A DNA stretch of 64,000 nt from the sequence record PV654397.1. One strand, 5' to 3'. Below are positions 43,753-62,945 of the stretch, one piece after another (within the stretch, counting starts at the first letter, position 1; the number at the start of each line of letters is the position of its first letter). A model generated the notes under the pieces. That model made no database searches, was not told where the DNA came from, and saw only the letters and a list, made by a program, of their open reading frames with translations. A program made the translations under genes and the position numbers.

Positions 43753-43814
43753 GCACCCTGTGGGCTAGTTTTTGTCTATGCGTATATAATAGCAAAGGGA
43801 CTGACCGGAGTCAA
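43753..43814 (-). ncRNA. ORF-less promoter + CTAGCCCACAGGGTGC element (copy 1), candidate sRNA
   Basis: TTGACT-N17-TATTAT with the -35 inside a terminator hairpin; motif at 43753-43768. Confidence 0.45.
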
Positions 43815-43826
43815 TCCCTTTTTTTA
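43795..43826. terminator. Repeated terminator hairpin GGGACTGAC-CGGA-GTCAATCCC (also at about 46055, 49334 and a variant at 53352)
   Basis: 9-bp stem with T-runs; identical copies directly after minus-strand gene stops. Confidence 0.75.
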
Positions 43827-43837
43827 TTCTTTTTTTG

Positions 43838-44038
43838 TTAGATGATTCTCCAATCATCAACGATCATGGTAAGATACCGAACCAGTGATTCGAGTGATTC
43901 GTGTTCTCGATAGTCTGCCGCTCCACCAGCGGTACAAGTACAGCCGATTAAGCCGTTTTGTAGTTCCTGGATCTTTACGTCGATCTGGTTGGCTTTAGCT
44001 TCTTTCAGTACTTCAACCAGGGCGATAGCGATAGACAT
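43838..44038 (-). CDS. Early-region hypothetical protein
   Basis: Cassette-driven ORF. Confidence 0.7.
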   Translation of the reverse strand: MSIAIALVEVLKEAKANQIDVKIQELQNGLIGCTCTAGGAADYREHESLESLVRYLTMIVDDWRII

Positions 44039-44128
44039 AATGTTTTACTCCAAACTATTGGCGGGAGAACTATTCCCCCGCTCTATGTAAAACATTATAC
44101 ATTACTGGTTAGTACTGTCAAATAGTTT

Positions 44129-44386
44129 TTATGAAATATCTTCGATGTAGTCGGCCCATTTCATTTTTTCAGTACTGTCAATGGCTACCGGATTATTTGG
44201 ATCAAACCATTCACCATCACCGCAATACATACCCACGGCTACGGTTTTATAGCCATCCTGGGCCGTACACCACGACATTGCACGATAGATATGGCCTTTA
44301 ACTGGTTGCAGTACTGGTAACGTTTTATGGTCTTCTACGTAGGCCATAGCTTGAGGATTTACCCGATATTGTGTGAACTGATCCAT
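44129..44386 (-). CDS. Early-region hypothetical protein
   Basis: Cassette-driven ORF. Confidence 0.7.
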   Translation of the reverse strand: MDQFTQYRVNPQAMAYVEDHKTLPVLQPVKGHIYRAMSWCTAQDGYKTVAVGMYCGDGEWFDPNNPVAIDSTEKMKWADYIEDIS

Positions 44387-44462
44387 TATGTTTCCCCTTG
44401 TAGTTAGTAAAGTTATTACATCAGTACTATCAAGCTATGTCAATAGTACTGAAATAAAACTT

Positions 44463-44687
44463 TTAGATTAGATTATTGAGGCCGTCAATGGTAGACTCAC
44501 TTTCTTCTTTCTCCCATTGTCGGTAGTACTTCCATGCTTCATGATAGGTGGCGATTAGTTCATCTTTTTGATCCTGGTTACATGCCAGTACTGAATCACG
44601 GTGAGCGGTGTTATAGATAGAATCGAATGATTTCTTCTCTTCTGCCAGGTTAGCTACTTCCCGCATCAGTTCATCAAAGTTAGCCAT
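44463..44687 (-). CDS. Early-region hypothetical protein
   Basis: Cassette-driven ORF. Confidence 0.7.
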   Translation of the reverse strand: MANFDELMREVANLAEEKKSFDSIYNTAHRDSVLACNQDQKDELIATYHEAWKYYRQWEKEESESTIDGLNNLI

Positions 44688-44754
44688 TTTATTACTCCTT
44701 TTAGTGGGGGAGGATATCTCCCCCTATGCAAAACATTATACTTTGTTTTAGTTA

Positions 44755-45018
44755 TTATGCAAGTACTTTTTTCATATAAACATTAAATTCTACACCGCCG
44801 TAACCTTCCACGATGATATGTTTTGCGTTATCACGTTTGCACATAGTGAAACCGTTGTTGATATGTTCTGCATTTTCCAGGGCGACATCACCGATAGCGG
44901 CACATACGGCACTAATAACAGTATTCCGCAAAGTACTGGTATCATTGGCGGTCATAGTAGTTTGCAGTACTACGTTGTCGTATACGTGTGCATTGATAGT
45001 GATTTCGATAGTGTTCAT
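44755..45018 (-). CDS. Early-region hypothetical protein
   Basis: Start trimmed to MNTIEI. Confidence 0.7.
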   Translation of the reverse strand: MNTIEITINAHVYDNVVLQTTMTANDTSTLRNTVISAVCAAIGDVALENAEHINNGFTMCKRDNAKHIIVEGYGGVEFNVYMKKVLA

Positions 45019-45105
45019 GGTGTATCTCCTGGACTTGAGGGGAAACCATTTCCCCCTCTCGATATAAAACATTATACGTTAATCTAACTACAATGCAAGT
45101 ACTTT

Positions 45106-45297
45106 TTAAATTTTATTTCCGATATAGTCCGGTCTATTCTTTTCGGTCATACGCTTTGCTAATGTCTGCATATGGCTTATAGCGTTCAAGGTGTCTTCCT
45201 CCAGGGATGAATCAAGATAATCAGGATCATTCTTCACCTTGCAATGATTATGATATCGTAGTACTGCCAGTACTTTTTTAACTTCTTCTACTGTCAT
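45106..45297 (-). CDS. Early-region hypothetical protein
   Basis: Coupled to the upstream ORF. Confidence 0.65.
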   Translation of the reverse strand: MTVEEVKKVLAVLRYHNHCKVKNDPDYLDSSLEEDTLNAISHMQTLAKRMTEKNRPDYIGNKI

Positions 45298-45566
45298 AAT
45301 AAGTACCCCACTTCGTTAGCTTTCAGGTTAGTATCAATCATCAGTGGATTTTTGTAGTTCACAAAACGATTAGTTTTTTCGATAGCAAATCCCATATAAT
45401 CCAGCTTACTAACAGTACATTCATTCTTAAAAACTTCTTTCGCTGCATCGATTGCTGATTGCATGGATAACCGACCATCTAAATTAATGTTTCCAAATGA
45501 TCCACCAGCAGAAGTAGGATTACCGTTCATATCTTTAATGATCATAGTAGCGGAGTAGCTAGACAT
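45294..45566 (-). CDS. Early-region hypothetical protein
   Basis: Cassette-driven ORF. Confidence 0.7.
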   Translation of the reverse strand: MSSYSATMIIKDMNGNPTSAGGSFGNINLDGRLSMQSAIDAAKEVFKNECTVSKLDYMGFAIEKTNRFVNYKNPLMIDTNLKANEVGYLL

Positions 45567-45650
45567 AATTTTGTTTCCTTTTAGTATCGGGGAGAACTAT
45601 TCTCCCCTTGATGTAAACTATTATACAGTACTGGTATACTTTGTCAATAC

Positions 45651-45872
45651 TTAATTACGGTTAAAATGATATGTGCCTTTATCATCCTGTACGCCCCATA
45701 CTGATTTACCATCAACACCAGTGAAGCCGGATTGTAATTCAATATGGAAACCATTATTATCAACTACAAAAACTTTTTTATTTTCATCCCGATAACATTG
45801 ATATTCTGAATCAACATTAAAGGCCGCATCATTCAGTAGATTGGAAGCGTAAATGCAAGTCATTGTAGTCAT
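45651..45872 (-). CDS. Early-region hypothetical protein
   Basis: Cassette-driven ORF. Confidence 0.7.
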   Translation of the reverse strand: MTTMTCIYASNLLNDAAFNVDSEYQCYRDENKKVFVVDNNGFHIELQSGFTGVDGKSVWGVQDDKGTYHFNRN

Positions 45873-46007
45873 GATTTTATTCCTTATTGCCAGGGAGAAC
45901 CGTTCCCCCTCTCGATATAAAACATTATACTTGATTCTAAGTACAATGCAAGTACTTTTTAAAAAATAGTTTTCAGTACTGAATACTTATATAATAGATA
46001 CACTTCC

Positions 46008-46074
46008 GCACCCTATGGGTCAGTGAGTTATCTCTCAATGGATATATAATAGCAAAGGGACTGACCGGAGTCAA
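46008..46074 (-). ncRNA. ORF-less promoter + CCCATAGGGTGC element (copy 2)
   Basis: Same architecture as copy 1. Confidence 0.45.
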
Positions 46075-46092
46075 TCCCTTTTTTAATCTTTT

Positions 46093-46677
46093 TTATCGTG
46101 TTACCTTACTTGCTGCCACATCACGCTTTTTATAGTACTGATTCCAGATATTGCTGGTTAAACCGTAATCAAGTACTTTAATAAGTCCATTACGATCCTG
46201 GCCGATATTCTGTTTTCTGATATCTCTTATCGTTAGTGTTGATAATGTATCATCAACGTGTTGTAGTGCATCAGCAAAGCGGTGCTGGCGTTCGATTGCA
46301 TTACGTTTAATATTGTACTTTAATTCATTGCACGCGTTTACGTGCTTCACACTGCCTTTGCTTGCAGTACTCAACCGATCCATAACGATAAACATATTAT
46401 CAGGATCGCATAAATGCATATGCACCTTTGCAAAGTACTGTTTCAACTGAGGGCGGTCATAGTCTAAAAAATTCCATACCTTACATTCAGTTTCATTTTG
46501 TTCTACACCCGCATCACAATTCGCGACCTTAATCACTAACCGATCATTTAAAGCGAATACTATACGGGAAGAACCAGCACCGATGATCTCCAGGCCAGCT
46601 AACCGACAAGCTGAAAGGATCTCTTTGTTGGTTTCCATTTCTGACAGTGTACGGATGAATTTAGTATAATTACGCAT
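46093..46677 (-). CDS. Ser/Thr protein kinase-like protein
   Basis: IGAGSSRIV glycine loop, VIKVA, QNETE helix C, FIVMDRL hinge, DIRKQNIG catalytic loop, VLDYG. Confidence 0.85.
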   Translation of the reverse strand: MRNYTKFIRTLSEMETNKEILSACRLAGLEIIGAGSSRIVFALNDRLVIKVANCDAGVEQNETECKVWNFLDYDRPQLKQYFAKVHMHLCDPDNMFIVMDRLSTASKGSVKHVNACNELKYNIKRNAIERQHRFADALQHVDDTLSTLTIRDIRKQNIGQDRNGLIKVLDYGLTSNIWNQYYKKRDVAASKVTR

Positions 46678-46708
46678 TGCATGTTCTCCTTGAGTTAATG
46701 AAACTATA

Positions 46709-46951
46709 TTACAGTACTTTACTATCAATGGCAACTACTTTTTTAACATTAACGGCGTGGATCACTTCCTTCGTGTTTTTAGTACTGAATACTTTCGCCG
46801 CTCCTTGTTCGACCGTGATACGATAGCGACCATTAACATCAACCATATTAATAAAGTCCGGCGTGCTGAATGGTGTTGTTTTACATTTGAGTACTGTTAA
46901 CAGTTCCACCAGCGATGTAGTTTCTTTGATACGTTTTTCTAAAGTAATCAT
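46709..46951 (-). CDS. Early-region hypothetical protein
   Basis: Start trimmed to MITLE; upstream module duplicated at 47227-47284. Confidence 0.7.
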   Translation of the reverse strand: MITLEKRIKETTSLVELLTVLKCKTTPFSTPDFINMVDVNGRYRITVEQGAAKVFSTKNTKEVIHAVNVKKVVAIDSKVL

Positions 46952-47008
46952 TTTGTTTCCCCCGTGTTGGTATGTACATATAGTACTAAAACATTTGAGT
47001 ACTGTCAA

Positions 47009-47227
47009 TTAGATAATATTATATTTCTTAAAATAAAATGCGTCTTGTGTTGGTTGATACTCGATACCGTTACCGTTATTGACTTCAACTAATAAACCTT
47101 TGTCAATTAGTTTTTTAATAGTACGATACCCTTGTTGAAAATTGGTAAAATGTGAATCATTACGAAAGGTATAACCGTGCTTAACTGCTTCATCAATAGT
47201 TTTCTTTTCGATTTTAGATAATTTCAT
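47009..47227 (-). CDS. Early-region hypothetical protein (possible winged-helix-like)
   Basis: Start trimmed to MKLSK; TIKKLIDKGLLVEV. Confidence 0.65.
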   Translation of the reverse strand: MKLSKIEKKTIDEAVKHGYTFRNDSHFTNFQQGYRTIKKLIDKGLLVEVNNGNGIEYQPTQDAFYFKKYNII

Positions 47228-47280
47228 TTTGTTTCTCCCGTGTTGGTATGTGTACATAGTACTAAAACAATTGAGTACTG

Positions 47281-47535
47281 TCAACGTGATATTAGTTTTA
47301 TTTTCTTATTGTATTGTTGATGCTCATAAAGGTTTATCTTTCCTGTGTTCTCGATTACTATCCTGTTGTTAGTGTCCACGTCGATTACACGCAGTTTCCC
47401 GTTGCTTAACTTCCTAGGTAATAGGTTACCATTAATAAACTCATTAGCAAGCTGTACGGCCTTTGTGATGATTCTCTGAGGTGCTTTATAGTGTACCCGT
47501 AAGATGTTATCTTTATATAGTTGAACCTTAATCAT
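47281..47535 (-). CDS. Early-region hypothetical protein
   Basis: ORF with RBS. Confidence 0.7.
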   Translation of the reverse strand: MIKVQLYKDNILRVHYKAPQRIITKAVQLANEFINGNLLPRKLSNGKLRVIDVDTNNRIVIENTGKINLYEHQQYNKKIKLISR

Positions 47536-47596
47536 TTTGTTTGTCCTATAAAAAAGGCGGGAACTGATCCCGCCGTGTTGTTAGTACTGCAAGTTA

Positions 47597-48001
47597 TTAG
47601 ATAACCTGGCGGCGTTTACTGTATACTGTTACACGATTACCCTTACGATCATGTCGGATCTCTTTCTGGTTGCGAATCAGTTCACTTGGACGCTTAAGGT
47701 TTGCCAGGTGATCCGCGTGAGTCCATGCGGTGTGGTTTACCTGTACTTTGATATCAGAATCAGCGATAAACTCATCTTGTGCGTCAAGTATTGCCGCCAG
47801 CATATCCGCTCGTTTTAGTTCTGCTGCTGTCAGTACTGGCTCAGGTGAATTCACAATATCAGAGATTTCTTTGAACTGTACGGCCCAGCGTTGACCTTTC
47901 GGTGCTGTCGTTCCCATGTCTTTAAATGCTGCTCCTTCCTCGCGTGCAACAATACGGGCAGCTTCACGGGTAGCGTAGAATTTAGTAATCATGGTATACA
48001 T
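47597..48001 (-). CDS. Early-region protein, paralog of 61283-61549
   Basis: Shared FxATRE.AR..AR..GA.FKDMG..G.RWA and DRKGNRVTVY. Confidence 0.8.
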   Translation of the reverse strand: MYTMITKFYATREAARIVAREEGAAFKDMGTTAPKGQRWAVQFKEISDIVNSPEPVLTAAELKRADMLAAILDAQDEFIADSDIKVQVNHTAWTHADHLANLKRPSELIRNQKEIRHDRKGNRVTVYSKRRQVI

Positions 48002-48087
48002 CCTATTAGTTAAGTTAGTACTACAAGTTAGAGTCTATTATAAAGTACTATCTGGGCAATGTCAAATAGTACTTTAAATGGATTCTA

Positions 48088-48411
48088 TTACATGTCTTTC
48101 TTACGTTTTACATCGTGGTAGCGAACTGTTATTTCTTTGTTGATCTCTTCCTCGATGCGGTGAATAACTTTTTCTTTCGGGTTGAAACCTATTACAGTTT
48201 CCTTAATGATTTCTAAACCCGTGTACTCGCCTTGTGTGCCGTAACCGTATGTAAAGGTTTCGTGTCCCAGGTCTTCCCAGCGATCACCAATCAATGCGGA
48301 CACGTAGCAGGAGTGGTAAGTATTGCCGTGGCTATCAGTCCACCGATTAACTTTAATGTCAAAGGAGGTTACAATTTTCAGTTCTACTTTCTGGGTAAGG
48401 ATCATAGCCAT
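48088..48411 (-). CDS. Early-region protein, paralog of 55287-55610
   Basis: Shared RWTDSxGNTYHSCxVS and FTYGY. Confidence 0.8.
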   Translation of the reverse strand: MAMILTQKVELKIVTSFDIKVNRWTDSHGNTYHSCYVSALIGDRWEDLGHETFTYGYGTQGEYTGLEIIKETVIGFNPKEKVIHRIEEEINKEITVRYHDVKRKKDM

Positions 48412-48498
48412 TTTTATTTCTCTCTCTTTGTTAGGAGGGGAACCATTCCCCTCGCTTGATGTAAACTATTATACAGTACTAAGATACTTTGTCAATAC

Positions 48499-48681
48499 TT
48501 ATTTTTTGGAAAGTTTACGCATTAATTCTACGCTTTCTTGTGAACGTTTTGCTACTTGACAAGCTGCATGGGCAGTAAACATTTTTGTATAGTCTGACGC
48601 TTTGCCACCGAACCGAGCGGCACGTTCACGGGCACTTGGAACTAATACGATTTCTTTCTTACAGATAGTGCACTTAGCCAT
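48499..48681 (-). CDS. Small putative Zn-binding protein
   Basis: CTIC...HAAC; start trimmed to MAKC. Confidence 0.65.
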   Translation of the reverse strand: MAKCTICKKEIVLVPSARERAARFGGKASDYTKMFTAHAACQVAKRSQESVELMRKLSKK

Positions 48682-48769
48682 TTTAATTTCTCTCTCTTTG
48701 TTAGGAGGGGAACCGTTTCCCCTCACTTGATGTAAACTATTATACAGTACTAAGATACTTTGTCAATAC

Positions 48770-49045
48770 TTAAGTATTGTAAATGTCGTGAATAGTGATA
48801 AAGTTTTTACGACCGTAAACATGTAAATCAGTATCAATGTAGTGCTTATCAAGTACATCCTCGACGCTTAAAGACGTGTCGTGAATATCTTCATAAAATT
48901 GTGGATCAACAATCGTGCTTAAGTCATCTGGCGTTAACTTATCGTTAAGACATTGAACCGCCTGGATATCTGCTTCACGTTTCCATTGTTCCAGATTAGT
49001 AGTCAGTACTTGCTCGATTTCGTTAGCTGTAAGTAAAGTCCGCAT
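48770..49045 (-). CDS. Early-region hypothetical protein
   Basis: Promoter-driven acidic ORF. Confidence 0.7.
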   Translation of the reverse strand: MRTLLTANEIEQVLTTNLEQWKREADIQAVQCLNDKLTPDDLSTIVDPQFYEDIHDTSLSVEDVLDKHYIDTDLHVYGRKNFITIHDIYNT

Positions 49046-49114
49046 TTTAATGTTTCCTTATCAGTGGTTGATGTAAGTATTATACTCGTTTAATTTCTAT
49101 TGTCAAACTATTTT

Positions 49115-49187
49115 ATCAGGGGAGTTTTTCGTATGTCTTACTCCTGGACTACTTAACGGGGTTACTTATTTCGTTCCCCGTCCTGAT
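49115..49187 (-). ncRNA. Candidate 73-nt three-way-junction small RNA (copy 1)
   Basis: Own TTGCAT-N16-TATAAT promoter; AUCAGG/CCUGAU closing stem, ACGGGG/CCCCGU and GGAGU/ACUCC hairpins; no ORF; second copy at 60606-60680. Confidence 0.55.
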
Positions 49188-49290
49188 GTAAAACATTATA
49201 CTTGATTCTAAGTACAATGCAAGTACTTTTTTAAAAATAGTTTTCAGTACTTGATAGTACTAGCCACCAGCAAACAATAGATACATTTAT

Positions 49291-49352
49291 GCACCCTGTG
49301 GGCTGATTTGTTTCTATGCGTATATAATAGCAAAGGGACTGACCGGAGTCAA
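49291..49352 (-). ncRNA. ORF-less promoter + CCCACAGGGTGC element (copy 3)
   Basis: Same architecture as copy 1. Confidence 0.45.
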
Positions 49353-49516
49353 TCCCTTTTTCAAATATTTTTAAACTTCTTTCGGGTTGCGATATGTGAT
49401 AGCGTTCGGGTACATTTGTTTAATGTTATTCCATGCCTGGTTAACATTATAACCACTTGATCGAATCAGTTGGTTATTACCGACACCTTGAAACACTACT
49501 TCAAATAAGAATTCTT

Positions 49517-49690
49517 TCATGCTTTCACCTCTCGATCTGCTTTGCCTTTACGCCAGGCTGTTGCTAATTGTTCGCGTTGCCATAAGTCGAGTGATACGTA
49601 AAGTTTTGCATTATCACCCTTCGGATATTCGCCAGTAGTACCAATCCGATAAAACAGATCTTTCAGTACTGTTAATTCTACCTGGACCAT
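49517..49690 (-). CDS. Early-region hypothetical protein
   Basis: Start trimmed to MVQVEL. Confidence 0.65.
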   Translation of the reverse strand: MVQVELTVLKDLFYRIGTTGEYPKGDNAKLYVSLDLWQREQLATAWRKGKADREVKA

Positions 49691-49776
49691 TATACTTTCC
49701 TCTTTGTTCGGAGGGGAACTATTCCCCTTCCGATATAAAACATTATACACTTTATTCAGTACTGTGCAAGTACTTT

Positions 49777-49989
49777 TTAATCTTTCAGCCAATGATCCTG
49801 AATGAATTTTTCACCGGAACCTTGCTGCATTGATTGTAACAGACGTTCGCGATGAGCGGCGGCGAATTGCTCAGTACTATGCGTTACACCTGGTTGATAT
49901 CTGGATTCACCATTTGGGGCGATGTATTGTACATCCCACGGTTTTTCGTTAGTATCAGACCATTTACGAACGATTAGTTGACCTTGCAT
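49777..49989 (-). CDS. Early-region hypothetical protein
   Basis: Cassette-driven ORF. Confidence 0.7.
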   Translation of the reverse strand: MQGQLIVRKWSDTNEKPWDVQYIAPNGESRYQPGVTHSTEQFAAAHRERLLQSMQQGSGEKFIQDHWLKD

Positions 49990-50062
49990 TTTTCTTTCCT
50001 CTTAGTGGGGAGAATCATTTCTCCCCTTCATGTAAACTATTATACAGTACTGGATTGCATTG

Positions 50063-50359: not shown

Positions 50360-50442
50360 ATATTACCTCTTAGTGGGGAGAATCATTTCTCCCCTTCATG
50401 TAAACTATTATACAGTACTATAATCTATTGTCAAATACTTTT

Positions 50443-50631: not shown

Positions 50632-50711
50632 TTTTTTATTTCCTCTTAGTAGGGGAAGATGTTTCCCCTTGATGCAAGTACTATAACAGTACTGAAAACT
50701 AAATGCAAGTA

Positions 50712-51068: not shown

Positions 51069-51131
51069 GATTACTATCCTCAGTTAAGATATAAAACATT
51101 ATACACTATCTTTCAGTACTGTCAATACTTT

Positions 51132-56605: not shown

Positions 56606-56632
56606 AAAAAAGCCCACCGTTTAAGGTGGGCT
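56606..56632 (-). terminator. Rho-independent terminator
   Basis: AGCCCACC-N6-GGTGGGCT plus T6. Confidence 0.8.
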
Positions 56633-56653
56633 AGTGATTCAGTACTTTAATTG

Positions 56654-57136
56654 TTATGCTTCAACTTTGCGATGAGCTTCGATCCATTCCTCGCGAGTCA
56701 TACCACTGGAGTTAATCGCGTCCAGTACTACCGCAATGCAGTTACCACGCACCGGAATCAGATATTCTTCCCCGTTGTCCAGTACTACCGCTACGCGTTC
56801 CTGAATCCATTTTTTGGCTTTTACTTCTGGCTTGTCTTCCCCATACTTAACCGCCAGGGCTTTTTGTGCCATCTCTGTAACTACTTCCAGATCCAATCCA
56901 ACTACTGCCGCCTGGATACTTTCAATTGTTGCTTGTAGTTCTGCTTCACGGGCCGCCTTTGCCGCTTCAATTTCTGCCGCTTTATTTGCTTGTAGTTCTT
57001 TCGCAGTACTGTACGCGATGTTAAAATTATTGCGTACCGCTTTCATGGTATCGTTATCCAGTTCAGCCAGGATCTCAGCCGCGACGTTAGTTTCATTTGC
57101 TACCAGTGCTTTGATGAATGATTTTACATTAGCCAT
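56654..57136 (-). CDS. Divergent H-NS/StpA-like protein
   Basis: Ala/Glu coiled coil, then VLDNGEEYLIPVRGNCIAVVLDAINSSGMTREEWI aligning by eye with H-NS [35 protein letters not shown]. Confidence 0.6.
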   Translation of the reverse strand: MANVKSFIKALVANETNVAAEILAELDNDTMKAVRNNFNIAYSTAKELQANKAAEIEAAKAAREAELQATIESIQAAVVGLDLEVVTEMAQKALAVKYGEDKPEVKAKKWIQERVAVVLDNGEEYLIPVRGNCIAVVLDAINSSGMTREEWIEAHRKVEA

Positions 57137-57341
57137 TTTATAAATCCTCAATTAAAGTTTAGTTTACGTTTATTAGTGTATCAAAGTTTTCTCGACGTGT
57201 CCAGTTTTTCGTTCGACTTACTGGCGGTCTACTTAGTGCTCCCCGTCTTGATGTAATACATTCTACGCTTTTCTGTGGTAATGTCAACTACTTTCTTAAA
57301 ACTATTTTCAAAGTATCTCAGTACTACGATACTACAAAAAC

Positions 57342-57363
57342 AAAAAAGCCCACCAGGTGGGCT
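57342..57363 (-). terminator. Rho-independent terminator
   Basis: AGCCCACCAGGTGGGCT palindrome plus T6. Confidence 0.7.
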
Positions 57364-57369
57364 ATGTAC

Positions 57370-57600
57370 TTAATCAGTGAGTAAAATATTAAACACTTTA
57401 CCATTTAACGTTATTGGTGCACTGCTACCAGGCTCAAGATCCGTTAATATACCTGCAATCGCTTTATCATTGGCGACCTTTCCAGTGTCCAACAGTACTA
57501 CAGTACTGATAAGATTAACGCTCGTTTCAATATCATAATGCACGGCGTTAAGTAGTTGTGTAGTACTGCTTTCGTTAAGTAAAACAATTCGCTTAGTCAT
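57370..57600 (-). CDS. Early-region hypothetical protein
   Basis: ORF. Confidence 0.65.
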   Translation of the reverse strand: MTKRIVLLNESSTTQLLNAVHYDIETSVNLISTVVLLDTGKVANDKAIAGILTDLEPGSSAPITLNGKVFNILLTD

Positions 57601-57621
57601 GATGTTACCCCGTAGTATCTA

Positions 57622-57921
57622 TCAACGGCAATTAATAACGCCGGTATGCGTTACTTTCTCAGTATCCATTACAGTGACCGAACCGCGTTTAGTACTGGCA
57701 TCATAATAAATTGTTGTGCTACCGTTTTCGTCTTCTTCATGGAACGGGCCGTTTTTAAATGCTTCCGGCTGGATCTCTAAATCCTTTAATACAATCTCGC
57801 CAGTTCTTTCATCGGTCATTGCAACAGTGCACTGAATGAATTTTTCACTACTTACATCTAATGACGCATTAACAGCGAAAGAGGAAACAGATAAAGCCAG
57901 GGCGATGATTGCAATTTTCAT
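57622..57921 (-). CDS. Exported/periplasmic protein
   Basis: Sec signal peptide MKIAIIALALSVSSFAVNA; two Cys. Confidence 0.75.
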   Translation of the reverse strand: MKIAIIALALSVSSFAVNASLDVSSEKFIQCTVAMTDERTGEIVLKDLEIQPEAFKNGPFHEEDENGSTTIYYDASTKRGSVTVMDTEKVTHTGVINCR

Positions 57922-58005
57922 TTGATTATCCTTAGTTACCAGGGGGAACCGCTCCCCCTTGCGATGTAAAATATTATACAGTACTAAAAACTATTATCAA
58001 GTACT

Positions 58006-58242
58006 TTATGATTTTTTATAAAACATTTCAGCCGTGATATTTTTACCCGTTGGTTGTACTTTATCCAGAATTTTTTGATGCCCAGGCCGTCCAAATGAAT
58101 ATGATCCGTAAACCGTAAACCAGTAGTTACCCTCAGTGTTTACATGTACAGCACAATAGGGTACACCCCGCGATTCATCACTAGTAAAGTGTACTACCGT
58201 TCCCGTTACATTCGCAGACGTTGATTTGATTTGTTCAAGCAT
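58006..58242 (-). CDS. Early-region hypothetical protein
   Basis: Cassette-driven ORF. Confidence 0.7.
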   Translation of the reverse strand: MLEQIKSTSANVTGTVVHFTSDESRGVPYCAVHVNTEGNYWFTVYGSYSFGRPGHQKILDKVQPTGKNITAEMFYKKS

Positions 58243-58351
58243 TTTCTTATTCCTTAGTTACCAGGGGAACCGCTCCCCCTATGCAAAACATTATACGCGT
58301 TTAAAAACTAATTGCAAGTATTTTAATAAAAAGTATTTGAAAAAATAGTTG

Positions 58352-58481
58352 TTGACAAGTGCATCCAGTACTGGCATAATTACTACATCAAGACGAAACA
58401 GTCACTAACCCACCGGGTGCCGAGATCCGTCTATTAAATGATTCAGTACTGAAAAAGTAACGGGGAGTTATTATCTCCCCG
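58352..58481 (+). ncRNA. Plus-strand promoter + CTAACCCACCGGGTGC element (copy 6), about 100-nt candidate sRNA
   Basis: TTGACA(58352)-N17-CATAAT; motif 58405-58420; hairpin CGGGGAG/CTCCCCG at 58461-58481; no ORF. Confidence 0.5.
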
Positions 58482-58486
58482 CGTTG

Positions 58487-58708
58487 TTATTTTGTAAGGT
58501 ATAAACAGAAGTCACCTTTATTTGCTACGCCGCCAGTGTAACGCGAGGAATAGTTAGAAACGTCCTGGACTTCTGCTATTACCAGGGTATCATCATTCAA
58601 TTCGTCGCAGAAGCAAACGGCTGGATCTTGTACGCCGATTTTGTCAGCATGTTCCCGCATAGATTTAACCAGTGCTTCCAGTTGGGAAAGAGTAGTGATA
58701 TTAGCCAT
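58487..58708 (-). CDS. Early-region hypothetical protein
   Basis: Start trimmed to MANIT. Confidence 0.7.
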   Translation of the reverse strand: MANITTLSQLEALVKSMREHADKIGVQDPAVCFCDELNDDTLVIAEVQDVSNYSSRYTGGVANKGDFCLYLTK

Positions 58709-58792
58709 TGTATTTTCCTCATTACCAGGGAGAACCATTTCTCCCTTTGATGTAAACCATTATACAGTACTGAAAACTAATTGCAAGTACTT

Positions 58793-58981
58793 TTAATTAA
58801 ATTCCATAAAATCATTTTCAACGTGCACAACAATCTGATTATTTTTAAAGGACGCAGAAAACTCTATACAATCATAAACCGCTTTTTCTGTTACCAGACT
58901 ATGAGCACCAATCGGATTAATTGGGGATTGAATTGTTTCAATCTCGTTACCTTGTTCATTAACGATTAAAATATTAAACAT
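58793..58981 (-). CDS. Early-region hypothetical protein
   Basis: Promoter-driven ORF. Confidence 0.6.
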   Translation of the reverse strand: MFNILIVNEQGNEIETIQSPINPIGAHSLVTEKAVYDCIEFSASFKNNQIVVHVENDFMEFN

Positions 58982-59020
58982 TGCCGTTACTCCTGGATAG
59001 TGTTAACTCGATATAAAGTA

Positions 59021-59203
59021 TTATACGCCTTTATTGCTTAGTGTCCAGTGATCACGCATCATACGCCCCGCACGATCCCAGCTAGTAGGCATGGGTATGC
59101 CTTGCAATTCGTTAGGGGAGATCTCGACCTCGATCCCTACATCAATAACAGTCATTCCAGCTTTCGCAGCTTGCTCGCGGATAACCTCAGATAATGTTGT
59201 CAT
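59021..59203 (-). CDS. Early-region hypothetical protein
   Basis: Promoter-driven ORF; upstream module duplicated at 58990-59020 and 59212-59250. Confidence 0.6.
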   Translation of the reverse strand: MTTLSEVIREQAAKAGMTVIDVGIEVEISPNELQGIPMPTSWDRAGRMMRDHWTLSNKGV

Positions 59204-59277
59204 GATTAAAGCTCCTGGATAGTGTTAACTCGATATAAAGTATTATACAGTACTGAAAACTAATTGCAAGTACTTTT

Positions 59278-59538
59278 TCAATATTGTTTGTCGTCGTCTT
59301 CCTCGATGAATTGACCGACGAAATGATCTACTTTCGCTTTGAGGCTTTTATAATCTTCTTCTACTTCCTTTAAACGTTCCTGGTAGTATTCCAGTGCTTG
59401 AATATACGCCGCCTCAGCAGTTTTTGCACGCATAGCTAAATTCATTCCACGCGTTTCATCAAATAGCCAATAACCATCGGTGCAATGACTGATAGATAAT
59501 GATTTACTTAGTGCTGTATAGCTAATTACTTTACTCAT
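59278..59538 (-). CDS. Early-region hypothetical protein
   Basis: Cassette-driven ORF with C-terminal coiled coil. Confidence 0.7.
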   Translation of the reverse strand: MSKVISYTALSKSLSISHCTDGYWLFDETRGMNLAMRAKTAEAAYIQALEYYQERLKEVEEDYKSLKAKVDHFVGQFIEEDDDKQY

Positions 59539-59595
59539 TAGATAACCCTCAGTAAAGGCGGGAACTATTACCCGCCATTATCTCAGTACTGAATA

Positions 59596-59835
59596 TTACA
59601 TTCCAACCATTGCAGCACGGATCGCAGTAGTGCTATACTTAAAGCCGTCCGGCGTTGTAGTAGTACCGTTGGCTTTTAATCTGCGGTACATACATTCCGC
59701 AGCAATATCTTTAGTTCTACTTTGTGCGATGCAACTTTGAGCAAGCCGATACAATGACTCACCGTTATTAATCCAAAGGCTTACATTCCAATGAGTTTTG
59801 TTTTTGTGACCGTTGTAAGTTTTAGTACTAGCCAT
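59596..59835 (-). CDS. Early-region protein, paralog of 61638-61877
   Basis: GHKNKTHWNVSLWINN...TPDGFKYSTTAIRAAMVGM. Confidence 0.8.
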   Translation of the reverse strand: MASTKTYNGHKNKTHWNVSLWINNGESLYRLAQSCIAQSRTKDIAAECMYRRLKANGTTTTPDGFKYSTTAIRAAMVGM

Positions 59836-59925
59836 TTTTAAATCCTCGTTTGAGCGGGGAACCACTCCCCGCCTCGATATAAAGTATTATACGCTTTTAA
59901 ACTTAGTTTGCAAGTACTTTTTAAA

Positions 59926-60537
59926 TTAATATTCGATTGATTCCACTACGCCATCAATAACATTGAATTGATACTCGTTACCCTCAATCAGTGCCGTAAT
60001 GTTTTCAGTAGTGAATTGATCCTCATATGCATTCTCTAAATCACGGTACAACTTGCGGGACAATTCACGAATAGTTTCAGTGAGTAGTTCCTCAAGCTCA
60101 TTAACTAACGTTTCTTGTTTTGCGGTTAAATCAGTGTAAGCCGATTCAATGTACCCGCTTACCGTGTTTTCGTGTGCGTAGCGAGAGTGTGAACGTTCTA
60201 CACTCATTGCCAAATCATCTTCATTCAACAAGTGACGGATAGAACGATATTTCGTTAACGCTTTAATCTTGCGTAAAAACTTCACTGCGTCCACGCTGTC
60301 AGTACTGATTGATGCACCGTCACCCTGGGACCAAAAACCGCTGAATTGTATTTCAGCTTCATTAATGCCATATTCCGGTAGTACTGTTTCTTTATAGTAT
60401 TCAATTTCACTTTCAGAAAAATAATTGTCGTTTGAGTTTTTTTCACGTTCCCGAACCAGTTCGATAGCTGACGTTTGTTGTTCTGCGTTCAATTCAGAAA
60501 AAGCCATAACATAAGTAGTAGTAGTGATAGTTTTCAT
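59926..60537 (-). CDS. Acidic phage hypothetical protein
   Basis: 203 aa, FSGFWSQGDGAS motif. Confidence 0.8.
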   Translation of the reverse strand: MKTITTTTYVMAFSELNAEQQTSAIELVREREKNSNDNYFSESEIEYYKETVLPEYGINEAEIQFSGFWSQGDGASISTDSVDAVKFLRKIKALTKYRSIRHLLNEDDLAMSVERSHSRYAHENTVSGYIESAYTDLTAKQETLVNELEELLTETIRELSRKLYRDLENAYEDQFTTENITALIEGNEYQFNVIDGVVESIEY

Positions 60538-60605
60538 TTTGTAACCCTCATTCAGTAGTTGATGTAAGTATTATACGCTTTTAAAAACATTTGTCAAACT
60601 ATTTT

Positions 60606-60680
60606 ATCAGGGGAGTTTTTCGTGTGCCTTACTCCTGGGCTACTTAACGGGAAGTTACTTATTTCGTTCCCCGTCCTGAT
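60606..60680 (-). ncRNA. Candidate three-way-junction small RNA (copy 2, 75 nt)
   Basis: Near-identical to 49115-49187 with stems preserved; own promoter. Confidence 0.55.
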
Positions 60681-60761
60681 GTAAAACATTATACGCCTTT
60701 AAACATAGTTTGCAAGTACTTTTTAAAAATAGTTTTCAGTACTGAATATTAAAAAAAAGTA

Positions 60762-60934
60762 TTGACAGCATTATCAAGTACTGGCATAATATACCCCATG
60801 ACAACAGCTAACCCACCGGGTGCACAATTGTAACTATACTAAACTAATTTTGCTATAGATACACTCCCGCACCCTATGGGCTACGGCTTATCTGCCAATG
60901 AATACATTATGCCAGTACTGACAAAATAAGTCAA
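60762..60934. promoter_or_regulatory. Convergent promoter pair, each followed by the CCCANNGGGTGC element (copies 7 and 8)
   Basis: + TTGACA(60762)-N17-CATAAT, motif 60808-60823; - TTGACT(60934)-N17-CATAAT, motif 60869-60884. Confidence 0.65.
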
Positions 60935-60964
60935 TACCGGCAATTGTAAAGATTTGTAAACTGC

Positions 60965-61195
60965 TTATACTGCAATCGCGTCCAGGCTGTAATAATAATA
61001 AGTGCCGTATTGGTGTACTTTATTACCTTTTATTTCAGTACTGAATGAATCCGAACGATTTGCATATGATGTTAATTTAAAGTACTTTGATTTGCTGATA
61101 CGTTGCCATACACCACAGATCCGCTGTAAGTAAGTAGTTTTATTCGTGGTAGTATCTTTTACGGTTTTAACTTCAGTCATATACATATTAGTCAT
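60965..61195 (-). CDS. Early-region hypothetical protein
   Basis: Cassette-driven ORF. Confidence 0.7.
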   Translation of the reverse strand: MTNMYMTEVKTVKDTTTNKTTYLQRICGVWQRISKSKYFKLTSYANRSDSFSTEIKGNKVHQYGTYYYYSLDAIAV

Positions 61196-61282
61196 TTTTA
61201 TTACTCCAGGTTATAGGCGGGAAGTGTTCCCGCTCTCGATGTAAAACATTATACGCCATTAAACATAGTTTGCAAGTACTTT

Positions 61283-61549
61283 TTATTCAAGTACTGCAAT
61301 CTTTTTTGTACGGTACACGGTCACGCGGTTGCCCTTTCGGTCGAGCTTTATTTCTACCACTCGACGCGATACACTATCGGGACTTTTTAAGGCCGCTAAC
61401 CAGTACTGTAATGATCTGGCGGTACTACGCTTTACAATGGCCCAACGTTTACCACGTTCCGATTGTACGCCCATATCTTTAAACGTTGCCCCGTCCTGGC
61501 GTGCGGCGATCCGAGCTTGTTCACGCGTCGCAAAATACTTAATATTCAT
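61283..61549 (-). CDS. Early-region protein, paralog of 47597-48001
   Basis: FATREQARIAARQDGATFKDMG...DRKGNRVTVY. Confidence 0.8.
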   Translation of the reverse strand: MNIKYFATREQARIAARQDGATFKDMGVQSERGKRWAIVKRSTARSLQYWLAALKSPDSVSRRVVEIKLDRKGNRVTVYRTKKIAVLE

Positions 61550-61637
61550 GCTGTTGCCCTTATCGTTGGTGTATGAATAAAACACTATTATAAAGTACTA
61601 TCCCCGTGCAATAGTACTTTAAATAAATTCTATTCTA

Positions 61638-61877
61638 TTACATTCCAACCATCGCCGCACGGATCGCAGTAGTGCTATATTTGAATCCGTCCGGTGTTTT
61701 ATCTTGTCCAGTCTGTTCTAAAAATAACATCATATGACGGGCCGCATCATTGCGATTAGTGTTGTCGTTAATAAAATCCAGGGCCAACCGATACAATCCC
61801 TCATCGTTATTAATCCACAGGCTTACATTCCAATGAGTTTTGTTTTTGTGACCTAAGAACATTTTTGATTTAGCCAT
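61638..61877 (-). CDS. Early-region protein, paralog of 59596-59835
   Basis: GHKNKTHWNVSLWINN...TPDGFKYSTTAIRAAMVGM. Confidence 0.8.
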   Translation of the reverse strand: MAKSKMFLGHKNKTHWNVSLWINNDEGLYRLALDFINDNTNRNDAARHMMLFLEQTGQDKTPDGFKYSTTAIRAAMVGM

Positions 61878-61970
61878 TTTTTTAATCCTCTTATATAGTG
61901 GGGAACTATTCCCCACCTGATGTAAAACATTATACGCTTTTAAACATAGTTTGCAAGTACTTTATTAAAC

Positions 61971-62333
61971 TTATTTGTAAATTTTGCCACTGTCAGCCCA
62001 TACCAGGAAACGAGGCATATTATCCCATGCATCTTGTTTTAAGTTTAAGCCGTGCAATTCCTCAGTTGTTGCCATCCCTGGTACTGGCTTACTACACACC
62101 GCGAAATTTTCGCCCATATACTGATAAACCATCGTCAAATCATTTGAGATCATTATATGGATCATTGAATCCAGCATCAAAGTAGCGGCGTATTGTTCAC
62201 GCTTAAGCGGCAACATTGCAATAAGTTCCCGATAAGCTGCAATGTGAATTTTTACCGTTTCAGCCGGAAGACCTTTCATCTCATCGCGGAAGTTTACCAG
62301 GTTAAGCATGATTTTATTGATTTGAGTCGCCAT
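61971..62333 (-). CDS. Early-region hypothetical protein
   Basis: Start trimmed to MATQI. Confidence 0.75.
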   Translation of the reverse strand: MATQINKIMLNLVNFRDEMKGLPAETVKIHIAAYRELIAMLPLKREQYAATLMLDSMIHIMISNDLTMVYQYMGENFAVCSKPVPGMATTEELHGLNLKQDAWDNMPRFLVWADSGKIYK

Positions 62334-62643
62334 CGTTTTAATCTCTCTTAATGTGTAGCGGGAAGTGTTCCCGCTCTCGATGTAAAACATTATACGCTTT
62401 TATCAGTACGGTGCAAGTACTTTCTACAAATACTTTTAAAATAGTTTTCTTTCTATATAGGAGTACTATTATTCAGTACTGAATCAATCCACCAAATCAT
62501 CCCTATACCCCGTAAAACGGCCTCAGACGCATTCTAACGCATTAATACACCTAAGCTATACATTTGCACCACTCCCAACAATCCAGGGCGTTACGGGCCG
62601 TTTAAACGCGTTAAATTATTTTCAATTATTTTGTTTTTAGGTA

Positions 62644-62945
62644 TTGACTTGATCCTGAAAAAGCGTATAATTACTACATAGACGCGAGAAAGCGGAAACC
62701 CCAGAGGGTGCGGAATTACGCCCAAAATTCAAGATATAAAAAAAGGATACACTCCCGCACCCTAGCAGGTAAACGCACTTTCTCAGTACTGAAATATAGT
62801 ACCATAGTCCGGCCCAGGATAGCAAGCAAATTAATTAAAACTTTTTTGCTTCCAGGGTATTGCTTTATTTTTTCAGTACTGTATAATAGTTCCATCAAGT
62901 CGAGAAAGACTCAAGCCCACCGGGTGCATAGTTACGCCCAAAATT
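62644..62945 (+). promoter_or_regulatory. Two plus-strand promoters each followed by a CCC.NNGGGTGC element and TTACGCCCAAAAT, with an inverted degenerate element between (copies 9-11)
   Basis: TTGACT(62644)-N16-TATAAT, motif 62696-62711; TTGCTT(62860)-N16-TATAAT, motif 62913-62927; inverted copy 62757-62769. Confidence 0.6.

Follow-up and report, generated by a model that had tools for sequence, protein, structure and literature searches.

The put RNAs of phage HK022 (putL and putR) are nascent RNAs made by host sigma70 polymerase from phage early promoters; they are built of stem-loops and need no ORF, and putL begins at about +3 (PMC9378689). A put RNA is about 70 nt long, with two long stems and a triplex; put occurs in two copies per genome and always faces the genes. 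Lambda nut (boxA plus boxB) and RfaH ops are promoter-proximal signals in leaders. In the T4-type phages, PeSLs are repeated intergenic cassettes that join a terminator stem-loop to a sigma70 early promoter in variable early regions (PMC2839356, PMC4122927); they precede genes and are defined by stem-loop plus promoter. In the Pseudomonas jumbo phage PA5oct, a phage related to the Rak2-like phages, two ORF-less regions of the long direct terminal repeat (DTR), ncRNA001 and ncRNA002, are highly transcribed and make up 1-5% of phage reads through infection (PMC7318152); these regions are 236 and 451 nt, single-copy, and were reported without known promoters. The pre-early region of T5 lies in a long DTR packed with small host-takeover genes under very strong sigma70 promoters, presumably the first DNA to enter the cell. 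Here we analyzed a 64,000-nt stretch of sequence record PV654397.1 (the window), in which a repeated, promoter-coupled and predicted non-coding element shares some features with each of these systems but differs in others.

The window is from an Asteriusvirus jumbo coliphage and is 100% identical to phage WPEC5, window positions 43000-63500 corresponding to WPEC5 record positions 662-21162. Every motif position recurred in that record with an offset of 359,664 bp, which gives repeats at 1-21662 and 359665-381326; the right end of the window is therefore the right copy of the DTR. A 21.5-kb DTR is annotated in vB_Ec-M-J, and a DTR was confirmed experimentally for fEgEco12 (PMC13070987). A sequence-only reading of the window had noted eleven ORF-less, promoter-driven copies of a shared motif, and this observation was confirmed. 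The exact pattern CTARCCCAYMGGGTGC occurred 5 times and, with up to 2 mismatches, 9 times (0.06 expected). The core CCCNNNGGGTGC occurred 10 times against 0.04 expected, at 43753, 46008, 49291, 51647, 53303, and 60869 on the minus strand and at 58409, 60812, 62700, and 62916 on the plus strand, which are ten of the eleven sites. The eleventh, at 62757 on the minus strand (TTACCTGCTAGGGTGC), is a degenerate copy that keeps CCU/AGG pairing and GGGTGC but was missed by our covariance model. Two small corrections were needed: the last copy starts at 62912 and not at 62913, and the plus-strand copies are not the only strong plus-strand promoters, since a further one without the motif lies at 62985-63013. 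The sequence-only reading did not recognize that the region is the DTR of the phage, and it missed the confinement of the motif to the repeat, its conservation in four named genera plus an unclassified Erwinia phage, and the fixed geometry of head-on pairs. In whole-genome scans, all copies lay in the DTR in WPEC5 and CBB and in one ~20-kb region in GAP32, RaK2, and pEa_SNUABM_50, with 20, 24, 13, 8, and 12 copies, respectively, and none elsewhere in 346-381 kb.

All ten window copies found by the covariance model had a sigma70-type promoter at a fixed distance that scored 9-12 of 13 (12 consensus positions plus a TG bonus). The same was true of all 67 distinct copies from six phages, against 6.5% of random positions in the same regions. 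The promoter of the 62757 copy, which the sequence-only reading had considered unclear, was read from the sequence as a hexamer pair with a TG. In four copies the -35 hexamer is embedded in a terminator hairpin, as had been proposed; three of these hairpins are located in the table, and the one upstream of 43753 was read separately. No Shine-Dalgarno sequence plus ORF of at least 25 aa was present within 134 nt downstream of any copy, nor within 260 nt for the four plus-strand copies, 62757, and 51647. The ~30-aa CDSs that the WPEC5 record places over some copies start at the TTG of the -35 hexamer and are spurious. The features of the region are listed below.

Coordinates of the terminal repeat and of the eleven predicted RNA modules in the window
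Feature	Position	Strand	Promoter	RNA element	Adjoining features	Covariance score (bits)
Right DTR copy	42339..64000	.			21,662 bp; window end is the right terminus of the genome; contains all motif copies	
Module 1	43739..43814	-	TTGACT-17-TATTAT (about 43814-43786), -35 inside a terminator hairpin; start near 43779	short H1 (UAG/CUA); core 43768-43753; H3 to 43741		38.7
Module 2	45994..46074	-	46074-46046, fused to 12-bp terminator stem 46081-46054	46041-45994; H1 UGAG/CUCA	followed by the UUCAGUACUGAA hairpin plus a U run, then a second promoter	57.8
Module 3	49277..49352	-	49352-49324, fused to terminator 49359-49332	49319-49277	Chi site directly behind it (49264-49271)	
Module 4	51633..51715	-	TTGACA-17-CATAAT with TG (51715-51687)	51679-51633; H1 GACG/CGUC	followed by a GATC cluster and the DksA/TraR-like gene	
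Module 5	53289..53369	-	53369-53341, fused to terminator 53376-53349	53336-53289; H1 UGAG/CUCA		54.8
Module 6	58352..58492	+	58352-58380	58388-58434	faces against the genes; followed by UUCAGUACUGAA and bidirectional terminator 58461-58481; predicted discrete RNA of about 100 nt	
Module 7	60762..60837	+	60762-60790	60801-60837; weak H1	head-on pair A; GGGTGC-N45-GCACCC to module 8; read-through RNA folds at -29.6 kcal/mol, z = -5.2	26.3
Module 8	60855..60934	-	60934-60906	60901-60855; H1 GGC/GCC	head-on pair A	41.9
Module 9	62644..62725	+	62644-62671	62678-62725; H1 CGC/GCG; core CCCCAGAGGGTGC	head-on pair B	29.2
Module 10 (degenerate)	62744..62825	-	TTGCTA-18-TACTAT (62825-62796)	core CCUGCUAGGGUGC; H3 62763-62744	head-on pair B; H3 runs straight into U7, which looks like a terminator; predicted RNA of about 55 nt	not found
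Module 11	62860..62941	+	TTGCTT-16-TATAAT with TG (62860-62887)	62894-62941; H1 AGUC/GACU	outermost copy, facing the terminus	48.5

Whereas the sequence-only reading recognized only a CCC-NNN-GGG mini-palindrome, comparison of the copies indicated that the motif is the invariant core of a folded RNA module of about 48 nt. The module begins with H1, a 5'-terminal hairpin whose shape is conserved but whose sequence is free, with a purine-rich loop. A linker of 3-4 nt follows, and then the core RCCC-AYM-GGGUGC, in which GGG can pair with the upstream CCC (H2) or GGGUG can pair with YRYCY 7-12 nt further on (H3); the two helices exclude each other. In H1 all four pairs change on both sides, with 121 compensatory cells against 38 +/- 4 in shuffles (0 of 500 reached this value), and 95% were paired against 17-59% when slid. 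These pair counts lean towards the structure, because the alignment behind them was fitted to the model. RNAalifold returned H1 plus H2. H2 has CCU/AGG double changes in two copies, and H3 was 91% paired against 33-56% when slid; all natural variants of GGGUGC (AGGUGC, GGAUGC, GGGUAC, and GGGUGU) keep H3 pairing. However, H2 and H3 rest mostly on invariant or one-sided variation, so the switch is plausible but not proven.

Several copies appeared to be closed units. A terminator lies 60-62 nt after GGGTGC in the plus-strand copy at window position 58388 and in copies of three relatives (loci L016 5019-, L011 10850+, and L014 14747+), and similar GC-rich hairpins were seen by eye in two RaK2 copies (L013 12954+ and 20021+) and in L016 12232-. 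H3, or its place, is followed by a T5 run in GAP32 and CBB copies. In contrast, most gene-facing copies have no clear terminator and run into the next promoter, and these could be leaders rather than free small RNAs. Head-on pairs keep an exact GGGTGC-N45-GCACCC spacing in four of the six phage lineages. The only RNA libraries that hold this sequence are metatranscriptome contigs, which show neither starts, ends, nor strand. A Pfam search of 30 DTR proteins identified only a GNAT acetyltransferase, a DksA/TraR zinc finger, and DUF7249, and thus no partner protein. Searches of Rfam, E. coli genomes, HK022 put, the PA5oct ncRNAs, and the literature, as far as it was searchable, gave no match.

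The analysis itself establishes the anatomy described above, with the module starting at about +3 of transcripts that host sigma70 RNA polymerase should make from the strongest immediate-early promoters of the repeat, and the covariation shows that the module works as a folded single strand, most simply the transcript. We are confident that this is a real structured, promoter-coupled RNA family. The product and the mechanism are inferred from sequence alone. In this view, each module is a non-coding transcription unit of its own: several copies that face away from the genes would run into a terminator about 100 nt from the start, a few would end at H3 plus a U run after about 55 nt, head-on pairs should stop each other, and gene-facing copies would run into the promoter of the next gene. 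With 10 copies per repeat, and so 20 per packaged genome, the module should be among the most abundant RNAs in the first minutes of infection. H1 would shield the 5' end from decay, and the bistable H2/H3 core would be the working part, bound by a protein conserved either among Enterobacterales hosts or among these phages. The RNA would act by amount, titrating or recruiting that protein, and gene-facing copies may also serve as leaders. Antisense pairing looks unlikely, since the invariant bases lie in stems and no similar or complementary stretch was found in 5,426 E. coli genomes. The interpretation offered by the sequence-only reading was thus partly supported: its first option, abundant early small RNAs that bind a protein, is the one we also favor, on the basis of copy number, promoter strength, terminators closing several copies 55-105 nt from the start, and invariant bases lying in stems rather than loops, but none of its three proposed functions (decoy, nut/put-like antitermination, and R-loop primer) is demonstrated. 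The distant relative PA5oct provides a partial precedent. The reading as a trans-acting protein-binding RNA remains tentative, somewhat less likely than not, and the exact 45-nt spacing of the head-on pairs points to a constraint that a simple sponge does not explain.

The strongest alternative, although unlikely, is put-like (or nut/ops-like) control of elongation, in which the nascent module would bind the RNA polymerase that made it, alone or with a factor, and make it resistant to pausing and termination. Transcripts from module promoters would then read through the short internal terminators of the repeat, while transcripts from ordinary gene promoters stop. In support of this, the module resembles putL in its start position and stem-loop construction, and six or seven copies head runs of genes that contain terminators. 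The terminators fused to module promoters have 12-bp stems, against 7-8 bp for the others, and long stems are reported to resist processive antitermination (PMC10325885). H1 loops such as GAGAAA, GCGAAA, and AGAUAA recall boxB-type purine loops, and the 12 invariant bases are, by inference, about the size of the non-template strand of a transcription bubble and end in TGC followed by a purine. However, the covariance model found nothing in HK022 (best E 0.37, inside the portal gene), the module is 48 nt against about 70 nt with a triplex for put, and no boxA or ops sequence accompanied the copies. Nearly every DTR gene has its own promoter, so read-through is not obviously needed. Four of the eleven copies face away from all genes, and some are followed at once by a terminator or use part of the element as one. 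In addition, all 67 copies sit at the 5' end, which antitermination does not require, as putR lies about 270 nt downstream.

A role as R-loop replication origins or primers is doubtful. Transcripts from the ORF-less promoters would form stable hybrids in the AT-rich DNA just downstream and prime leading-strand synthesis, as at T4 oriF and oriG, and head-on pairs would give two-way starts or antisense control, as with ColE1 RNA I and RNA II. Consistent with this, the G-rich core (GGGUGCGGAG) is followed by very AT-rich DNA, head-on pairs with fixed geometry lie near the DTR ends in four lineages, and these phages have a T4-type replisome (PMC5259590). On the other hand, ten or more origins in 21 kb is unusual, a covarying 5' hairpin and an invariant structured core are not features of T4 R-loop origins, and H1, H2, and H3 would compete with hybrid formation.

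Slightly less likely still is a signal at the DNA level, in which CCCAYMGGGTGC and the inverted GGGTGC-N45-GCACCC pairs would be binding sites for a phage or host protein (early-promoter shut-off, insulator, packaging, or end function), or the head-on promoters would act as transcription barriers that shield the repeat ends, with the RNA as a by-product. The 45-bp spacing is exact in 20 pair members, about five helical turns centre to centre; pairs lie about 1-3 kb from the terminus in the window and near both DTR ends in CBB; and the modules are embedded among AGTACT palindromes that look like operators. However, the compensatory changes in H1 and the CCU/AGG changes in H2 are not expected for a duplex-DNA site, the orientation is always fixed relative to the promoter, and most copies are single. 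The least likely reading is a PeSL-type regulatory cassette only, in which the conserved stretch would be the initial transcribed sequence of a duplicated promoter-terminator cassette, kept because it helps promoter escape and 5'-end stability and provides homology for shuffling genes in a hyperplastic region, with no function of its own; although four copies are terminator-promoter fusions, the DTR is a mosaic among relatives (only 40-86% of the query covered, in many pieces), a metatranscriptome contig joins 60748 to 60855 so that a relative lacks one module, and ordinary DTR genes also start with CAUC.AGAG plus a 5' hairpin, twelve bases stay invariant across phages that otherwise share little DNA identity while the flanks diverge, the cassettes carry no gene, the ordinary gene cassettes of the region lack the core, and paired copies keep a fixed spacing.

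Compared with the T5 pre-early region, this locus likewise lies in a long DTR packed with small host-takeover genes under very strong sigma70 promoters, presumably the first DNA to enter the cell, but a repeated structured RNA module is not known to have been described for T5. The modules share with lambda nut and RfaH ops a promoter-proximal position; the H1 loops recall boxB, and the 12-nt core is ops-sized and can, by inference, form a mini-hairpin, whereas there was no boxA enrichment near the modules, no ops match, and no N-like or RfaH-like gene identified in the repeat. As in PA5oct, the modules are ORF-less regions inside a long DTR, but the covariance model found no match in the DTR of that phage (best E 1.1, filters off). 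Four window copies have the terminator-promoter fusion of PeSLs, but here the conserved part lies downstream of the start, folds as RNA, and has no gene behind it. Finally, the module and HK022 put would both be nascent, stem-loop RNAs of host sigma70 polymerase from phage early promoters; the module is shorter than put, at about 48 nt, and it occurs 10-12 times per repeat, in both orientations and in head-on pairs.

The observation made in the sequence-only reading was confirmed: the pattern it had described gave 5 exact matches and 9 matches with up to two mismatches (0.06 expected), and the core CCCNNNGGGTGC occurred 10 times against 0.04 expected, all between 43.7 and 63 kb. The eleventh site, 62757 on the minus strand, was a degenerate copy (TTACCTGCTAGGGTGC). 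The sequences around the sites showed in every case a sigma70-type promoter (TTGACA or TTGACT, a 16–18 nt spacer, then TATTAT, CATAAT or TATAAT, often with an upstream TG), a CA(T/A) start-site motif 6–8 nt after the -10 hexamer, and then the conserved stretch. No copy had a ribosome-binding site plus an ORF of at least 25 aa within 134 nt, and six copies had none within 260 nt. The ~30-aa hypothetical CDSs that the public WPEC5 annotation places over some of the modules begin at the TTG of the -35 hexamer, upstream of the start, and are almost certainly artefacts; a small ORF across the motif was rejected because it starts upstream of the transcription start. Whereas the sequence-only reading had described the plus-strand copies as the only strong plus-strand promoters found, only five sites on the plus strand of the whole 64-kb window reached 11 of 12 promoter matches, of which three were module promoters, one was a further strong promoter without the motif, and one lay inside a gene.

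The region was 100% identical to Escherichia phage WPEC5, an Asteriusvirus jumbo myovirus of 381 kb, and whole-genome work therefore used the WPEC5 record. Every motif position recurred in that record with an offset of 359,664 bp, which indicated that the record carries a 21,662-bp direct terminal repeat (DTR). A 21.5-kb DTR is annotated in the relative vB_Ec-M-J, and a 21.0-kb DTR was confirmed by restriction mapping in fEgEco12 (PMC13070987). All genes of the repeat are small, lie on the minus strand and read inward from the terminus, and nearly every one has its own promoter followed by a 5' hairpin, in a PeSL-like unit with about 26 members (repeat families D1–D6) consisting of AAAAAGTAC-TTGCAA or TTGACA, a 16-nt spacer, TATAAT, gttttaCATCgagag, a GGGGAAC..GTTCCCC hairpin, and then SD and ATG. 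Pfam recognized only a GNAT acetyltransferase, a DksA/TraR zinc finger and two DUF7249 paralogues among 30 of these proteins, with no RNA-binding candidate; the DUF7249 paralogues were carried by a duplicated segment with 2042-bp spacing and 84–89% identity.

Coordinates of features in the window, and in related phages where stated
Position	Strand	Feature
42339-64000		Right copy of the direct terminal repeat; the window ends at the genome terminus
42339-64000		Highest density of the AGTACT palindrome, which occurs in the whole window
43200-63650		Gene cassettes (about 26 copies, e.g. 45909-45964, 53797-53852)
43699-63423		Chi sequence GCTGGTGG, 12 sites; inverted pair at 63404-63423
43765-43857, 45973-46074, 49244-49333, 53268-53369 and others		CDSs of the public WPEC5 annotation over modules
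upstream of 43753		Terminator fused to a module promoter
46081-46054, 49359-49332, 53376-53349		Terminators fused to module promoters, 12-bp stems
47556-47574, 56611-56632, 57347-57363, 58460-58482		Other terminators of the repeat, 7-8 bp stems
51553-51621		Five GATC sites (GATCAA repeats), between module 4 and the DksA/TraR-like gene
58388	+	Module facing against the genes
58461-58481		Bidirectional terminator behind module 58388+
59594-59839 and 61636-61881		Duplicated segment with two DUF7249 paralogues
60748-60855		Interval with plus-strand module 7 and its promoter, missing from a wastewater contig
62300-64000		ORF-less terminal 1.7 kb
62757	-	Degenerate module copy
62860	+	Outward-facing promoter
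62985	+	Outward-facing strong promoter without the motif
63110-63230		Iteron-like direct repeats, TAGCCGT(C/T)TA and CCATCCAG
about 22800-22860 of L013 (RaK2)		Inverted repeats between head-on module pairs
about 2550-2600 and 3100-3150 of L016 (Hallingskeid)		Inverted repeats between head-on module pairs
about 22340-22370 of L014 (a further relative)		Inverted repeats between head-on module pairs

To determine how widely the module is spread, a sensitive DNA search was conducted with one 86-nt module, and it was found in 52 phage records, which besides Asteriusvirus included Klebsiella RaK2, K64-1 and KP13-7, Cronobacter GAP32, Pectobacterium CBB, and Erwinia pEa_SNUABM_50, pEa_SNUABM_19 and Hallingskeid. 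We then built a covariance model (R1; 48 positions, two helices) from 15 ungapped copies, because the MAFFT alignment (A1) was not consistent in the region of the 5' hairpin H1. The model found 76 copies in the window and six relatives, and in whole-genome scans it found 20 in WPEC5 (10 per repeat), 24 in CBB (12 per repeat), 13 in GAP32, 8 in RaK2 and 12 in pEa_SNUABM_50. Every copy lay inside the DTR or, where none is annotated, inside one region of about 20 kb, and none lay elsewhere in 346–381 kb. The E-values from this quickly calibrated model are rough, and it is the bit scores (26–67) and the complete absence of hits outside the repeats that carry the argument. In IMG/VR, model-positive loci all came from contigs of 345–378 kb or from one 109-kb fragment, and single pattern hits on small viral contigs were all model-negative. 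A 14-base pattern scan of bacterial genomes was uninformative, returning only single hits in unrelated, mostly high-GC genomes at about the chance level for 596 Gb. The module was absent from the DTR of the distant relative PA5oct, and searches of the literature for the motif strings and for transcriptomes of these genera found nothing relevant. The only RNA libraries containing the sequence were metatranscriptomes; four runs of these consisted of Logan contigs from wastewater and whole-organism samples, which show presence only, give no starts, ends or strand, break at the repeated cassettes, and may be virion DNA. One contig from a wastewater RNA library joined the two ends of the interval holding plus-strand module 7 and its promoter with 8 other letters between; a circulating relative therefore lacks this module, so modules are gained and lost as units.

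All 67 distinct copies carried a promoter scoring at least 9 of 13 at a fixed distance, against 6.5% of random positions in the same regions; finding the motif equally often without promoters had been named beforehand as a result that would refute the family. In the model-fitted alignment, the module consisted of A(U/A) as the likely 5' end; H1, a stem of 3–5 bp with a purine-rich loop such as GCGAAA, GAGAAA, AGAUAA or AGAACAA; a linker of 3–4 nt, often CUAA or UUAG; and the core RCCC-AYM-GGGUGC, followed by a 6-nt loop with A at +3 and U at +6 and then by (G)YRYCY. H1 was the best-supported helix. All four of its pairs changed on both sides (for example GC 35 and CG 22 at one pair), there were 121 compensatory cells against 38 ± 4 in shuffles with none of 500 shuffles reaching that number, and pairing was 95%, against 17–59% when the partner was slid. 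RNAalifold returned H1 plus H2 on the same alignment. Because this alignment was fitted to the model, these numbers lean towards the structure; however, the 40 or so distinct stem sequences can be read directly from the unaligned copies. A naive longest-stem test did not separate real from shuffled sequence (3.9 against 3.4 bp), and each module folded alone was not significant (z about -1), as expected for small hairpins. H2 (CCC:GGG) was almost invariant, with CCU/AGG double changes in a CBB copy and in the degenerate copy of the window. H3, a third helix that the sequence-only reading had not seen, forms when GGGUG(C) pairs with positions +7 to +12. It was 91% paired in 72 sequences, against 33–56% when slid, and every natural variant of GGGUGC (AGGUGC, GGAUGC, GGGUAC, GGGUGU) kept H3 pairing, although the GGGUGC side hardly varies, so that the variation is effectively one-sided. 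H2 and H3 share the GGG and cannot form together. We infer from this that the core may be a two-state element, although such a switch rests on limited variation.

We next analyzed what lies behind the modules. Several single copies facing against the genes run into the bidirectional terminator of the neighbouring gene 60–62 nt after GGGTGC; this holds for window 58388+ and for copies in CBB, pEa_SNUABM_50 and Hallingskeid, and predicts discrete RNAs of about 100 nt, whereas two RaK2 copies showed similar hairpins only by eye. In the degenerate copy, H3 runs straight into U7 and scores as a terminator, and one copy each in CBB and GAP32 has a T5 run directly after H3. Copies facing the genes are followed by an AGTACT palindrome and then, 45–65 nt after GGGTGC, by the -35 hexamer of the ordinary promoter of the next gene in all the phages examined. 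Most of the gene-facing copies had only a weak AU-rich hairpin plus U run, or none; in the window three of them have a weak UUCAGUACUGAA hairpin plus a U run. About 28 copies form head-on pairs, and in 20 of them, from the window, CBB, GAP32 and pEa_SNUABM_50, the spacing is exactly GGGTGC-N45-GCACCC, even though the intervening sequence differs. A transcript that read through a pair would fold into a long hairpin (-30 kcal/mol, z of -4 to -5). Between the head-on pairs, RaK2 (L013), Hallingskeid (L016) and L014 carry inverted repeats such as GAGAATGATAATGATTCTC, in which we count 16 of 19 matches to the Fur-box consensus; no such sequence lies in the pairs of the window.

The palindrome AGTACT (often TTCAGTACTGAA) occurred 6.4 times per kb in the repeat against 2.9 per kb in the rest of the window. 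It sits inside promoter spacers (TTGACA-N8-CAGTACTGGCATAAT), lies 10–50 nt behind 41 of 67 modules, against 20% of random windows, and appears beside the modules in all five relatives compared, so it is a candidate operator for an early-transcription regulator. The E. coli Chi sequence occurred 12 times in the window against 0.38 expected, with eleven sites in the terminal repeat, nine on the minus strand, and an inverted pair 0.6 kb from the terminus, which suggests protection of the incoming DNA ends from RecBCD. The GATC cluster behind module 4 falls within 70 nt, where 0.72 sites per 320 nt are expected, and the orthologous place in Erwinia phage Hallingskeid also has GATCAA repeats. The iteron-like repeats lie in the non-coding stretch next to the genome terminus, downstream of the outward-facing promoters, and may be a packaging, end or origin signal.

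The analysis itself establishes a conserved, structured, promoter-coupled, non-coding module that is confined to the terminal repeat (or, where none is annotated, to one region of about 20 kb) of Rak2-like jumbo phages of Enterobacterales; what the module does is a matter of inference from sequence alone. We infer that it is made as RNA by host polymerase at once after DNA entry and in large amounts, with 20 templates per genome under near-consensus promoters. H1, at +3, would act as a 5'-end shield, which matches the 5' hairpins of the ordinary gene leaders in the same region; 5'-terminal stem-loops have a stabilizing effect in E. coli. The invariant H2/H3 core would be the working part, recognized by a protein. 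The functional interpretation in the sequence-only reading, which offered small RNAs acting as protein decoys, nut/put-like antitermination signals or R-loop primers, was supported only in part. We tentatively favour a dose-driven, trans-acting protein-binding RNA, because several copies appear to be closed units, they occur in both orientations, the invariant bases sit in stems, and no host complement was found in the E. coli genomes searched. Three narrower ideas were dropped on inspection: a CsrA sponge, because the GGA in the H3 loop is missing in about a third of copies; a -10-like hexamer after H3, because the key T is present in only about 55% of copies in AT-rich sequence; and pairing of the H1 loop AGAUA with UAUCU, which was seen in one subfamily only.

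Of the alternatives, put-like action on the polymerase is the least unlikely. It fits the +3 position and the long-stem terminators at module boundaries, and the difference in stem length between these and the other terminators of the repeat could matter if the module confers read-through; however, it sits badly with the away-facing copies, the self-terminating copies, and a promoter in front of every gene. A bolder and improbable form of this reading is that the module is a second, independent example of a nascent RNA that reprograms host RNA polymerase by itself, in the manner of put but from virulent jumbo phages, with the bistable H2/H3 core as the switch. The fixed-geometry head-on pairs at the ends of the repeat would then use the same module to build transcription barriers or two-way R-loop starts, and one small RNA and DNA module would organize immediate-early transcription, and possibly replication, of the first 21 kb that enters the cell. 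R-loop origins alone were considered improbable, and a DNA-level site or barrier slightly more so; the 45-bp spacing argues for it and the H1 covariation argues against it. A PeSL-like cassette with no function of its own was the least likely of these readings.

Rak2-like jumbo phages (Asteriusvirus, Alcyoneusvirus, Mimasvirus, Eneladusvirus and relatives) are isolated again and again as therapy and biocontrol candidates, yet their first minutes in the cell are almost unknown and the roughly 60 small genes of the terminal repeat carry no annotation. A structured RNA made, as predicted, from 10–12 of the strongest early promoters, and conserved while the surrounding genes turn over, is likely to be a main player in host takeover, in defence against host systems, or in control of early transcription. 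The family now has a covariance model, defined helices and clear mutational targets (the CCC, GGGUGC and YRYCY segments), so the question can be tested directly, and it would also correct current annotations, which either leave these loci blank or place spurious 30-aa genes on them.

The module was compared with known systems one by one. A cmscan of 42000-64000 against Rfam 15 at E up to 5 gave only two chance-level hits (Trp_leader and S15), neither at a module. [quoted passage not shown] For lambda-type nut sites, in which boxA lies next to a boxB hairpin and works together with an N protein, boxA-like words (YGCTCTTTA) were at or below chance (21 against 28.9 expected) with none at a module, and Pfam gave no N-like hit among the 30 DTR proteins. 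The RfaH ops element GGCGGTAGNNTG had no match with up to 1 mismatch in the window. As to mimicry of a host CRISPR repeat (RNA anti-CRISPR) or another host RNA, blastn of a module against 5,426 complete E. coli genomes gave no match at E up to 10, although short partial mimicry would be missed. Unlike the tandem repeats of ToxI-like antitoxins of type III toxin-antitoxin systems, which lie next to an endoribonuclease toxin gene, the copies are dispersed 0.1–7 kb apart, each with its own promoter, and no ToxN- or AbiQ-type hit was found by Pfam among the 30 DTR proteins scanned. The terminator stem-loop fused to a sigma70 early promoter that characterizes the PeSL cassettes of T4-type phages was found in 4 of 11 modules, the other 7 lacking the fusion, but the module does not directly precede a gene that it expresses, since no SD plus ORF lies within 134–260 nt and gene-facing copies are followed by a second promoter before the gene. 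The features of a stand-alone bacterial or phage small-RNA gene, namely its own promoter, no ORF and a terminator within about 50–300 nt, come together at 58388+, at 62757- and in away-facing copies of CBB, pEa_SNUABM_50 and Hallingskeid, whereas two RaK2 copies show such hairpins only by eye and most gene-facing copies have only a weak AU-rich hairpin plus U run, or none. The nearest biological precedent is the pair of highly transcribed ORF-less DTR regions of PA5oct (PMC7318152), although these are unrelated in sequence and structure. Taken together, the module, embedded in PeSL-like terminator-promoter cassettes, would work most like a promoter-proximal RNA element (put, nut) or a sibling small-RNA family.
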